Assembly: GCA_965644265.1 (NCBI GenBank)
Contig: OZ286459.1
Span: 128,154,001-128,218,000 of the forward strand
DNA length: 64,000 nt
Direction of reading: 5' to 3'
Source: Glycera tridactyla
Lineage: Eukaryota
The notes under the pieces were generated by a model. That model had not been told where the DNA came from. It made no database searches and was given only the letters and a program-made list of their open reading frames with translations. Below are positions 33,225 through 57,400 of the stretch, piece by piece (the stretch's first letter is position 1; each line of letters begins with the position of its first letter). A program made the position numbers and the translations under genes.

Positions 33225-33405
33225 TTACGCGCCCATCATTTTCTTAACCATATACCCAGGCATCGAATAGAAGAAAAGGGCTAGGATTACGGTTAGAAGG
33301 GCGCCAATGATGGCTTTGATGATCACCCATTTGTAGTTCCTCCACAGGATATACTTGAGGGCCTTTAGAGGGCTCAGGAACCACATAAACGTCACATCCG
33401 GGCGA
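33225..33405 (-). CDS. otof: otoferlin terminal TM exon 3 ([59 protein letters not shown])
   Basis: acceptor tttcttttaccctaatatag|T CGC CCG; 181 nt to TAA; AATAAA follows 7 nt after the stop. Confidence 0.9.
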
Positions 33406-36400
33406 CTATATTAGGGTAAAAGAAACAGTACAATTAACATCTCAAAGAAAGTCTCAAGTGGATCACAGTGACTAATTTGCAGTATGAACAGTGCATCAAT
33501 AATTGTTTTCCTGTGAAAAACAAAGTCCTTTCTGGTGTACCCTTTATGCAACATCATGTATCAAGAAGATCCTAACAAAATGCACATGGCGCAATCTGTG
33601 AACTCATGGATCAGACGAGTTTCCTGTTCTAGGTAATGGGAACATGACAGAAATCAATACATGCTAGTTGGTTATACGCATGACGTATAGACATGTGTAT
33701 TAGATGAGTGATTTACCCCGCTTGACCATGGCACGTGCCATGGGATGACTTGCATCTTCTGAAAAGACTGATGTGGTAGGCATCTCTTTATCTTGATGCC
33801 TATCTGCTCTTTTGTCAATGTGGGTACCTACAGATACACCATATATTGGTTTGACCACTGGCGAGATATGTATGCTCATCATGGAAAATGTTGATATACA
33901 TGTGATGAATATGCATGCATGATGGTCACGTGATGAAGACGGCTCTTGCTGGCCCTATGCACCCATCATTTTCTTGACCATGTATCCAGGCATAGAGTAG
34001 AAGAACAGGGCCAGAATTATAGTGAGAAGTATGATAACAATAGCTTTGATGATGACCCATTTGTAGTTCCGCCAGAGGATATACCGAATAGACTTGAGAG
34101 GGCTCAGAAACCATATGAACGAACTGTCAGGACGGCTATATCAAAACAAAAACAAGTTATTAAGAACTTTCAATTATCCCTTAACACAATATGCATTGTC
34201 TGGAAATAAAATCGAACATGTTTATGAGCAACCGTCGATCTAAGCAAGTATTTGCAAGTCCATTACTGTCGGACTTTCTCCATGAGGCCATTTGATCCCT
34301 GCTTACATTATGTAAATGTGTATTCAAAATATATGTAGCAATGTGTACCCAACAAACCAGGCAGGAAATAGCATAAAACGTTCTGACAAACTTCTGTGAT
34401 GGGTATGTATATGTGTATCCATGCAATGAATATAATGTTGCATATCAGCAAATATATCTGGACCTACTGACTAATTGGGTTCTGTGGTGGTTCGAAGAAT
34501 ATCAGGCACTCAAAAGGGATTATCAAATGAACAAAGTGCCAATCATATACCAGATGGATGTACACACTAAACGTCAGGCAAACACGCCAAATGAGATGTA
34601 TATGGGGGTGGGCTTCGATTGACAGATGTTCATGAATTCCCTGTAACTGCCAGCGGCTCAAAAAGCAGTTTGGTGTGGTAGTTTTCCTCATTACCAATAC
34701 CATTGAAAATACCGAATGGGTTTCTGAATATTTTGGTCATTCCTGATCCAGTGAATACGGGTTTTTCTCACTAATCTTTTCCCGGCCCCAGGGAGGCTCC
34801 AGGCATGCGCAGACAGCCTGATAATTCTAGTTCTGTCGACGAAGCCTCCTCGCTATCAATGGTAACCAATAGGGGTAATACTTTAAACCTCATTATTCAT
34901 GTTAATCCATTCTTCATGGGCTCTTTAAAGCTTTCATACATATCAATAGAAAGACCAGTTATCAATCTGCAGAATATGGGAATAATTGCATGAGAGTGAA
35001 CTAGGACATTTCTGGCCTGAAGTTAGCTATCTTTCTGGATGTCTGCTCTGAGTAATCATATGCAGTGGGATAGCAGTCAACCCACGCCTGCCCCTCTTCC
35101 ATACATAACCCCCTGTAATGTTGGTATGTGGTTATTACCTCACATCTAAGTTCACTTCCCAGCTGGTGAGAGTGAGATCAGATATGTGACTTTTATCATC
35201 ACAACTTCCAGTTAAGGTGAGGTAAGTGACCAATGTACATTTTCACAAGGGTCAGGACTAACTCACCAGAAGGTCATAGATCGAAGCCTCTCATCTGAGA
35301 TTAGTGAATTTTGATGAGATATCCCTGACTGCATCACTCAAGCAGGTTATCATCCTCGTCGGCGGAACTGGTATTATTGCCACTAATTTCACCCTCTTAG
35401 ACTGAAGAGGAGCTAGTGAAAAAAGCCCGTATTGCCCATGGCAGGTTTTATGCAATTTTCTAGTCAAATTATTGTCTGAATCTTGCTGAATCACAACTCT
35501 GCTGAATCTCTGCTGCCAGATATCGGAATGAATACAAGGACTGCAATGAAGTATACATGTCTGAAACTACCCTTGAATCCTTGTCACTCATACACGCATG
35601 TACACACCTATGCACTCACACACATGAATATGGAACATTGATAGTTTATAATATGAATCATCACTCAAATCCCAAGCTGGAACAATTCACAACTAATCTC
35701 TGAAAAAGGAATGAAGCTAGTTATACACATATGAACACATAAGTAATGCATGAGACCTGCCATTGTAAATGCACTCCTTTGATATGAATTGTAGATATCT
35801 GTCACTGATGTACAAGAGTTTCAGAATACACAGGCTTCGATATAGCATCAGTGAATGGTCATGAATTCAGGTGCAAGCCTGCCACTATTGAATGAGGTCA
35901 TGTACATATACCGTGGCCACTATGCTCCTAATATTTTTTTGACCATGTAGCCAGGCATGGAGTAGAAGAAGAGGGCCACCATAGCTGTCAGAAGCATAGT
36001 AACAAGCGCTTTGATGATCACCCATCTGTAGTTTCTCCAAAGGAGATATCGAATCGACTTGAGAGGACTGAGGAACCATATGAAGGAGGAGTCAGGCCGA
36101 CTAGAGAAGTAGAGAAAAAAAGCAAGAAATATCATCAATCAGCATGTCTCTAGAATTCATGCCATTGGGCCCTTAACTTCAAAGATGGATATCTTACCAA
36201 ATTTTGTGATTGAACCCGAAGACAATATCTATCCAGCTGACATCATTTGGCTTGGTGGGACAATTATTTTGGGGAAGATGTTTTATGTTTATCTTTGTCC
36301 GACACCAGGCTGGGGAAGTTTCTATCATGTGCTGACGTGTCTTGGGACGGAGAGAAAACTTCCTACTCGAAATGGAGAGCGGAAATGAACAGGCAGCTCC

Positions 36401-54400: not shown

Positions 54401-57400
54401 CTCATCAAAAACTGGGATATAAGCAGTTAAAGCTCATCAAAAATGACCCAAACGATCATAGTTGTCACACACACATACACACAGAAACATAGTCAGTCAT
54501 ACCCAAATAAGAAGTGTGTAATGGACAGAAGCTATTACATCCAAGTGAATGTAACTCATTATCTACCCTACGAAACTCATTTGGGTGATACTGAATGATG
54601 GTGACTTGTAAATATGATCCCAATATGGTCAACATGGATAAAAAGACCATTTCAGTACGAAACACCTTCGACTCACTGCAACTTTTGATTAAAATCTACT
54701 TAGATGTTTATGACATCCAGCTGCACAGAATCTTCCAACAATGCTCACAGAGGCCACATGCTACACTTCAGCAACACAAAGTCAACATCTACAGACAAAC
54801 TCAACGAACACCGCCAATAATCCTAACATTTCTTATCTGATTTGTCTTTTCGTAGAATGTACAGTAATCATAAGTAATCAAAATCTGAGCCAATTTCATC
54901 AGGTTTTTGCTATGAGTGCAATATATGCTTCACTACGCCCATTGCTATCTCTTTCTCGAATATTGTTATTCATCTCTCCAACAAGGTGATAATTTTGCAA
55001 GGACTGAATTGACAGGATTCACTAATGTGGAAAACTTCACTACTGTGGAAAAGAAAGGTCTTTTTATCCAAATTGATGAGAAATACTGATAAATTGCTTT
55101 TCATCTATGAAGTGAAAACTGGGAATAGAAAACATAGTTCAATGTTTGTTGAATGTACTCAAAGCGGTTGCCTCTGGCAAAAGACGACAACCATTTATCT
55201 ATTCTACATAGGATGGATATTTCATTCCAATTTAAAATCAAGTTGAGAAGTGGATATATGAAAAGTATAATGCATTCAGAAATAGAGGCAAGTGTAGCTG
55301 GTGTATTTGTCACGTCATATCAGGGCAGTAAGTGACCACTCACCATCAAGTTTTACACCATTTTCGTCCACTGTGATGGGAAGAATAAGAAGAGTCTGCT
55401 CAAATTTGTTCAACAATGATGAAAACTCAACTATATTCCCTGATACCATTCTAACAATTATGACTACGACACATGACAAGCACCACAAAAAATAAATATC
55501 TTTAAACATACGATGGCAATTTAATTGAGTTAGCTTGCTGATTTTTTTTATTGAATAATGTGATAAATGTATACAGTACTTTGGTCTGAAAAGGCACATT
55601 TCCAAATATACTCCTTATCACTGATAAGAAAAGTCTCTCTCCTAATCAGATATATCAAAAATGATATTTTCGTTATCTGTATATGATGACAATAATACAT
55701 TTCACTCACTGGAGTGATTGTGAATAGACCCCAGGTCTATGAACAGGTCTGGTCGGATTCATATATATTTTTTTAAAACTCTGATTCTTTCTTCATGAGC
55801 ATGAAAAGTTCATATTGTTCAATTGTGATCGGGTTTGAAAAGGTTTCAGTCACAAATATACTTGTCAGAAATGCAATATATCTATCTATAATGATGTATG
55901 ATATCAGATTATGTACCAGTCAAAGAAACTGATCACCATGACTAATCTCTGCTTTTGCATGACTGGAATCAATCATGAACACTAAGCAAGGCAGACAGAG
56001 AGCATCATATAGTATGCCACTCAACAAGTACAACTTTGCTCATCCAGCACATAGGTATTCTAACAGTTCTATGGAAGTGAGACGAAACACATTACCACTG
56101 ACGCACAAACATTGAAGAGGAGAACATTATTGGTCAAATAGTCATGGAATTTACGCACCTTCTTCTTCCATTTCGACCAATTGAGCATTGAAAATACGGT
56201 TGCCAACTCGAACCTTGCCAGGCTGGAAGTGAGGTCCATCAATCTTGCCATCTTTACACAGCTTTGCCAATATTTGCGTAGGCTTTTGAGGATCTCGCCA
56301 TGTATTGTAACCAACCCTGAATACCAAAGAAGCATATGGAGTTGATTCCATGATTGAAATACGAGACAAAAACCAATAAATGTAATGATCTTTCAATGGT
56401 GTGACGATTCATGTTCATGCACAGTGTAAGTGCTGACTTATGAACATACTTGAATACGATTAATAAGGCAGTAGTATACAGGGGCTCCCGGAGACAAATT
56501 GAGCAATTTAATGAATATGCAATGGACAAACTGGTCAACACACACCTGGAGGTATAATTAAGATGTGTAGGCAGTAGAATAGTTCATTATTCACCTGCCA
56601 TGTAGTTTCACAATGACTTTTGTGGCCATCCATAAGGCCTAATAAATCTTGATTTCAGGAGTGTATATAATCACACTTCTCCCCTCTCTACAAGGTATTC
56701 GTATGACCTAAAGTGTCTACTACATCATGAATACAGTATAAAAACATGACAAATAGTAGAGTGTTCAGAATACTCTTGAAAGCGGATGGCATTTCACCAA
56801 ACATCTTCTGGTATCAACTGGCACACAAAACAGGTTAATATTGGGTGCACCATTTGGAAAGAATCTCTCATTCAATTCAATCGAATCAATCCTGAGTCAA
56901 TTCCTGTATGATACACTTTTAAGCACAGAATTGATGGTGCAAAGAGCGTAATATTCCCGGTGTATATGAACTCATTCAAATTCGATGATCGTCTCTATGT
57001 GCAAAAGTAGTTTTGCCCAATGATGCAATTGAACGTTGGTCATTTCACACTGGTGAATATCACACTGTGGACATCAGGCTACACCAAAGGCAGCGATATT
57101 TACTTCCATCAGAGCATACATCATCCCCAACGATACTTTTAAATGCACTGTCTGAATAAAAAACATGATTGATAGGCAATCATCCAGGAAGGGCACCCAT
57201 AACTAGTCTCGATAGGGGAAGAACAATGTAATTCATTACGGTAATGTCCAGTGGAGATGTATATTATGGAATCATATGATAATACAGTGAGTTCATACAT
57301 ATAATACCTAATGTCAATGGGATCATCACACTCACAAACATTGATACAGAACCTTGAGAAGTGTGTTCCATATATCATCGGAATAGGATTGTGCTTTTAT

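Follow-up and report, generated by a model that had tools for sequence, protein, structure and literature searches.

The DNA analyzed here is a stretch of 64,000 nucleotides (nt) from the genome of Glycera tridactyla (GenBank assembly GCA_965644265.1, contig OZ286459.1, positions 128,154,001 to 128,218,000 of the forward strand), referred to below as the window and numbered from its first letter. The region of interest is the 3′ end of a gene of the ferlin family, which lies on the minus strand; the part of the gene in which a DysF domain or the FerA/FerB arrangement of type-2 ferlins would be sought is situated beyond the end of the window. The model of this region (Table 1) rests on splice sites and reading frame, on homology, and on RNA. 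Two coding exons of the model are present in tandem copies. One encodes part of the last C2 domain and occurs twice (exons A and B); the other encodes the C-terminal membrane anchor and occurs three times (anchor exons 1, 2, and 3).

The exon translations match the Pfam families C2, dsrm_Ferlin, and Ferlin_C. Over its full length, the assembled C-terminus can be aligned with otoferlins, and it is 78.6% identical to bivalve otoferlin-like proteins, the nearest named ones, and 72–73% identical to the otoferlins of vertebrates. When exon A was compared with solved structures, otoferlin was the best match (E-value 2.3e-19), followed by myoferlin (2.1e-14) and dysferlin (1.7e-12). Based on the structure match and on the similarity to the bivalve proteins, the gene is, by its sequence, an otoferlin-type ferlin, and the view of it as a vesicle-fusion gene related to the ferlins, taken in a preliminary description of this DNA, is borne out. 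In hair cells, calcium-triggered vesicle fusion is driven by otoferlin, the deafness protein. Transcripts of the animal itself were absent from the protein collections, which were queried with the exon open reading frames (ORFs), with a profile seeded by the window exons, and with exon U; the best match was the one at 78.6% identity. A search of representative sequences returned mostly short genomic ORFs, and few long ferlins were usable. There is no run of N within the analyzed gene region, and the N gaps of the window lie elsewhere (9423–9752, 12949–13172, and 27412–27657).

Table 1. Exons and other features of the 3′ end of the otoferlin-type gene, in window coordinates.
Feature	Position	Strand	Evidence
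C2 exon A, 150 nt; in last C2 domain, covers strand 1, Ca2+-binding loop 1, and the strands after it	49145..49294	-	AG...GTATGT
C2 exon B, 150 nt; paralogue of A	48889..49038	-	AG...GTATGT; RNA joints to both W and X
Intron between A and B, 106 nt	49039..49144	-	read from sequence
Anchor exon 1, 181 nt; juxtamembrane segment, transmembrane helix, and stop	35920..36100	-	acceptor, stop, Pfam Ferlin_C, tblastn
Anchor exon 2, 181 nt	33955..34135	-	acceptor, stop, Pfam Ferlin_C, tblastn
Anchor exon 3, 181 nt	33225..33405	-	acceptor, stop, Pfam Ferlin_C, tblastn
First canonical poly(A) signal, AATAAA	33212..33217	-	starts 8 nt after anchor 3 stop
Exon U; end of ferlin double-stranded RNA-binding-like domain	56159..56316	-	Pfam dsrm_Ferlin, E-value 6e-15; AG acceptor, GTGCGT donor
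Conserved intron block directly 3′ of exon U	55989..56158	-	alignment to L009, 1219–1402
Candidate 27-nt cassette microexon; would insert VDENGVKLD	55344..55370	-	pyrimidine tract and CAG acceptor, GTGAGT donor
Exon V; linker preceding last C2 domain	50934..51073	-	splice sites; aligns to homologues
Exon W; protein ends RKPK	50365..50453	-	RNA contigs cover W and join it to exon B
Exon X; remainder of last C2 domain as far as loop 3	44684..44874	-	RNA contigs; boundaries; translation
Exon Y	43598..43776	-	splice sites; Ferlin_C start; alignment
Exon Z; last common exon	42838..42938	-	splice sites

Exons A and B have the anatomy of a mutually exclusive pair: they are homologous, lie next to each other, and agree in length and phase, their splice sites are intact, and both are under selection. 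Their products are identical at 41 of 49 residues. The eight differences (V5C, V6I, A19S, Y30F, V39I, V41L, C43A, and I46V) are mostly conservative, and one of them, A19S, falls in loop 1. The last C2 domain is called C2F under the six-domain naming and C2G in the structures of 2025. In mouse otoferlin, where the domain is named C2G, the Ca2+ ligands of its loop 1 are E1742, D1743, and D1754 (PMC12526402). By spacing, these correspond to positions 16, 17, and 28 of the exon, and all three ligands are kept in both A and B. Since A and B differ at only 8 of 49, mostly conservative, positions, a functional difference between them, if there is any, would be a fine adjustment. Exon A shares 42–43 of its 49 residues with insect exons, and exon B shares 41 of 49 with mollusc exons; being as close to the exons of other phyla as B is, A does not look like a decaying copy.

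Each anchor exon is preceded by a pyrimidine tract and an AG, and is terminated by its own stop codon. Exon Z ends in AA, and the first base of each anchor exon completes an asparagine codon. The similarity among the three copies begins ~20 nt upstream of the acceptor and stops at the stop codon. At the protein level, anchors 1 and 2 are 83% identical, as are anchors 2 and 3, while anchors 1 and 3 are 71% identical, and the differences are found mostly in the first (cytosolic) half of the transmembrane helix, which is also where TMD1 and TMD2, the two anchors of mammals, mainly differ. A tblastn search of the window revealed no fourth anchor copy. No AATAAA or ATTAAA was found between anchor 1 and anchor 3 in a scan of the minus strand from 36100 to 29000, and no good donor follows the stop codons of anchors 1 and 2.

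The divergence of the copies was examined separately at synonymous and nonsynonymous sites. For A and B, the proportion of synonymous differences (pS) is 0.82 and that of nonsynonymous differences (pN) is 0.087; for the anchors, pS is 0.57–0.79, which is near saturation, and pN is 0.10–0.16. All five copies together thus range over 0.57–0.82 in pS vs. 0.09–0.16 in pN, which puts both sets well outside what chance would give. Because synonymous sites are near saturation, the copies must be old and have not been recently homogenized, and recent gene conversion is excluded on the same grounds. As judged from these values, every C2 and anchor copy is under strong purifying selection, and the two duplicated modules, the C2 pair and the anchors, are real and almost certainly functional. 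The possibility that the copies are an artefact of assembly (collapsed haplotypes or mis-joined duplicates) is hardly worth entertaining: the copies differ by 22–25% at the DNA level in a codon-structured pattern, the flanks are unique, the region is free of N runs, and an equivalent tandem layout is present in independent assemblies of other animals.

The locus is represented in only two RNA runs (X1 and X2), both of a single study, the contigs of which were mapped on positions 44600–50500. Both runs contain spliced contigs at 100% identity and, since they are spliced at this identity, they are RNA of the same species. The joints from W to B and from B to X were present with 0–1 mismatches, and exon B is used in RNA. 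No joint from A to B and none from W to X could be observed in the contigs of the two runs. The longer contig, of 6,253 nt, extends 2,973 nt 5′ of exon W and includes ~2,386 nt of 3′ untranslated region (UTR) past the anchor stop codon; the contig of the other run is 2,472 nt long. The lengths past the stop codon (111 and 2,386 nt) were tried as a guide to the identity of the anchor and rejected, as no scenario fits them uniquely.

The explanation that we favor, and consider fairly likely to be correct, is that two coding exons of an otoferlin-type gene were duplicated in tandem long ago and that all copies were kept functional, A and B as mutually exclusive exons and the anchors as alternative ones. 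A and B would form a pair of which each transcript takes one. In the simplest mechanism, the donor of exon Z would splice to any one of three competing anchor acceptors, and the anchor exon reached first would provide the transmembrane helix and the stop codon. The copies downstream of the chosen anchor would then become untranslated 3′ UTR, since the sequence between the anchors appears to offer neither a poly(A) signal nor a good donor.

Several observations weigh against this explanation. The depth of exon A is zero in both runs, and the RNA mapped on 44600–50500 gives no evidence for the use of exon A, of the candidate microexon, or of more than one anchor. The 6,253-nt contig passes all three module sites without a break, which fits a single dominant isoform. 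Finally, no mechanism enforcing the exclusion of A or B is visible: the length of either exon is divisible by three, and the intron that separates them, at 106 nt, is spliceable. The weight of the RNA data is limited, since contigs lose rare variants and both runs come from one study of unknown tissue. Because the contig is unbroken through all module sites, we infer that one module combination dominates in the available RNA material. The preliminary description had taken a single dominant isoform in all tissues as the outcome that would speak against its reading. A start in that direction has been made, with one combination in two runs, but these represent one study, and the selection data argue for use of the remaining copies elsewhere.

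Three ways of enforcing the choice between A and B were considered and rejected. For steric exclusion, the 106-nt intron would be too long; a likely branch site lies ~18 nt upstream of exon B. Nonsense-mediated decay caused by a frameshift is rejected because both exons measure 150 nt, and incompatibility of U2 and U12 splice sites because both introns are GT–AG.

With exon B as the only C2 copy in RNA and the depth of A at zero, the gene could also be thought to have one working isoform, exon A and two of the anchors being unused leftovers of old duplications or acting as untranslated RNA only; the downstream anchors would sit in the 3′ UTR anyway. Unused copies of such age, however, are expected to have pN close to pS and to have acquired stop codons or indels. 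The observed pN is 0.09–0.16, all five copies have kept their exact lengths and intact splice sites, and exon A retains its similarity to insect exons. We therefore find a single working isoform unlikely and, given the selection data, prefer the explanation in which all copies are functional, with exon A and the other anchors presumably used in particular cells or stages.

The preliminary description had listed three variable modules in this part of the gene. For the C2 pair and the anchors, this stands on size, phase, splice sites, and selection. The third, a 27-nt cassette microexon in the 5,085-nt intron that follows exon U, has the sequence that was described: it is of frame-preserving length (≤27 nt), so that neither inclusion nor skipping shifts the frame, it has splice sites at both ends, and of its reading frames only the required one is open. 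It is the sole strict candidate in this intron, yet 14% of shuffled introns yield at least one such candidate. On sequence grounds, the microexon is possibly genuine, with the balance tilted somewhat against it. In a mollusc-like locus (L007), no candidate similar to it was found.

The same intron has a conserved segment. Exon U, which leaves one base (G) for the following codon, aligns to a metagenome scaffold from ENA (L009) that belongs to a related organism, with exon DNA ~80–85% identical to the window. The alignment has 74% identity over 352 nt and continues through the first ~170 nt of the following intron; the intron upstream of exon U does not align. The conserved intron block may be a splicing control element. 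The L009 contig ends ~200 nt before the expected position of the microexon.

It had also been proposed that the microexon, the C2 pair, and the anchors are three independent switches that combine freely into up to 12 isoforms, making up a small Dscam-like system. All sequence elements for 12 isoforms are present, with frames and splice sites intact; the conserved block beside exon U gives a hint that splicing in the intron of the microexon is regulated; and in the gene models of vertebrates, either type of C2 exon can be found with either type of anchor. Nevertheless, the figure of 12 is upper-bound arithmetic, whereas the RNA of the two runs shows W–B–X only, that is, a single C2 choice in unbroken contigs. 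The case for the microexon is a motif match of a kind expected in 14% of shuffles, and the vertebrate combinations are not phased transcripts but were gathered from automatic models of different species, some of them possibly of paralogues. Docking and selector sequences, which the preliminary description had suggested looking for, were not encountered: a search within the sequence found no repeated complementary element of this type between introns, and the inverted repeats that it did find in introns were short (14–27 nt) and imperfect and had no relation to the exon copies. RNA folds were no better than those of shuffled sequences (z-scores of −0.3 and −1.5; the A–B intron has z = −1.5), so no significant structure is present. 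With just two and three variants, free combination of a Dscam-like type appears quite improbable. Since the available RNA is dominated by one combination, the real repertoire of the anciently duplicated, functional copies is probably a few regulated isoforms rather than 12 free combinations.

The introns of the gene contain several repeats. A 370-nt intronic tandem duplication at 49313–50053, with two copies that are 95% alike and an inner 28-nt doublet, ends ~20 nt upstream of the exon A acceptor and has zero RNA depth. In the intron between X and Y, a 42-nt minisatellite of ~13 copies (44051–44612) begins ~70 nt past the donor of exon X and produces long spurious ORFs on both strands. A short intronic segment at 45265–45322 (and 46936–46996) has matches of 90–95% to hundreds of RNA contigs. 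At 45265–45322, the summed RNA depth is ~15,000, with many loose ends, and the segment looks like a dispersed, highly transcribed repeat; an Rfam search with it gave no match. The intron between Z and anchor 1 has a 93-nt inverted repeat (40869–41099), 91% complementary and with arms 45 nt apart, direct copies related to it (40450–40585), and a (TCCA)n run (40638–40695). The inverted and direct repeats look like relics of transposons.

The 2 × 3 arrangement of the window can be compared with several known genes. Dscam-type clusters share with it homologous exons that stand in tandem, have the same length, and are expected to be taken one per transcript. They differ in that the window has only two C2 variants and that its anchors, unlike internal cassettes, are alternatives for the terminal exon.

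A much closer parallel to the C2 pair was found in lizards. At the OTOF locus of Gekko kuhli (L003, 22539–22971), the first part of the C2 exon is present as two tandem 99-nt copies, each with AG and GT, which are ~330 nt apart, and two 181-nt anchor exons lie further downstream. As in the window, the duplicated exon has the equivalent codon (YELR...) as its start, loop 1 of the last C2 domain is encoded in it, and the C2 pair stands upstream of tandem anchors, so that both modules are in one gene. Unlike in the window, the duplicated unit measures 99 nt (33 residues), because vertebrates split the window-type exon, and the lizard copies diverge more inside loop 1 (DDDYF...SSDIF vs. DDAFM...MSDIY). 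Lizard OTOF probably has a mutually exclusive C2 exon pair that has gone unrecognized. Gene models of Phrynosoma and Gekko (P0106 and P0235) contain both 33-residue copies in tandem, which is most likely an annotation error. In the garter snake locus, both anchors and one C2 copy are present, with no gap for a second, and a second C2 copy was absent from three mollusc-like loci and a spider locus. An assignment of A and B to the two lizard types was attempted and given up, the exon being so conserved that the distance between A and B equals the distance to the exons of other phyla. Variable positions 19 and 30 are common to the A/B pair and the lizard types, a coincidence with a chance probability of ~0.19 (hypergeometric).

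The gecko gene bears on a further proposal of the preliminary description, namely that the cassettes may substitute in an invertebrate for the ferlin gene duplicates of vertebrates. This is contradicted by the gecko OTOF gene, which has a C2 pair and two 181-nt anchors of its own, and by mammalian OTOF, which switches anchors. In the human gene, alternative splicing affects exons 6, 31, and 47 (PMC7768390, PMC10394277). Exon 47 gives the brain form, with the anchor TMD2, and exon 48 the cochlear form, with TMD1; the two anchors differ chiefly in the membrane helix and localize differently in cultured cells (PMC7768390, PMC10394277). The anchor exons of the window have the anatomy of this switch: the terminal coding exons are homologous and in tandem, and every one of them brings its own acceptor, membrane helix, and stop codon. 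In mammals as in the model proposed here, inclusion of the upstream exon leaves the downstream one untranslated, and it is mainly in the transmembrane segment that the copies differ. The window differs in having three copies instead of two, and in that their usage is a prediction from sequence. A gene model of Alligator (P0209) has a tail that passes from one anchor type directly into part of the other; this is an annotation artefact arising from tandem anchors.

Anchor exons of 181 nt, or an equal span of 59 codons, are present in the gecko, garter snake, and mollusc-like loci, as in the window. Two mollusc-like genomes (L001 and L004) have one C2 exon and two tandem 181-nt anchors, and a single C2 copy is likewise seen in two other mollusc-like loci and in the spider locus. 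In L004 (12675–13019), the last 13 codons of the pre-anchor exon (GLARNEPDPLDKP) are repeated four times in tandem, which could be a set of alternative donors or a duplicated exon end. A tree of 59 columns groups the three window anchors together (support 85/70) and unites the TMD1 and TMD2 types of vertebrates in a clade of their own (81/85), which weakly suggests that window and vertebrate anchors arose by separate duplications. No C-terminal alternative was found among isoforms X1–X5 of Ruditapes, X1/X3 of Thamnophis, X1/X2 of Bombus, and two Pimephales entries, which differ only upstream or not at all. We found no paper on the C2 exon pair or on anchor arrays in invertebrate ferlins.

The gene described has three copies of the anchor and two of the calcium-binding loop of the membrane-docking C2 domain. 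We know of no explanation for the two alternative membrane anchors of otoferlin. The most interesting aspect of the comparison is that the identical two swap sites are found in a lizard and in this invertebrate. Since the gecko gene has both of them too, loop 1 of the C2 domain and the anchor appear to be recurrent targets of isoform tuning. A bolder and rather doubtful extension is that bilaterian otoferlin genes repeatedly evolved or retained a two-site code of C2 loop 1 and anchor, here 2 × 3, with the choices coupled; if so, certain Ca2+/lipid-binding loops would go with certain anchors in different secretory cell types, and vertebrate OTOF would turn out to contain a pair of mutually exclusive exons that has been missed. 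The comparison also brings to notice the lizard gene models that wrongly include both C2 copies. Seen against mammalian OTOF, the C2 pair and the anchor array are a further version of a known switch and not a new principle of gene organization.

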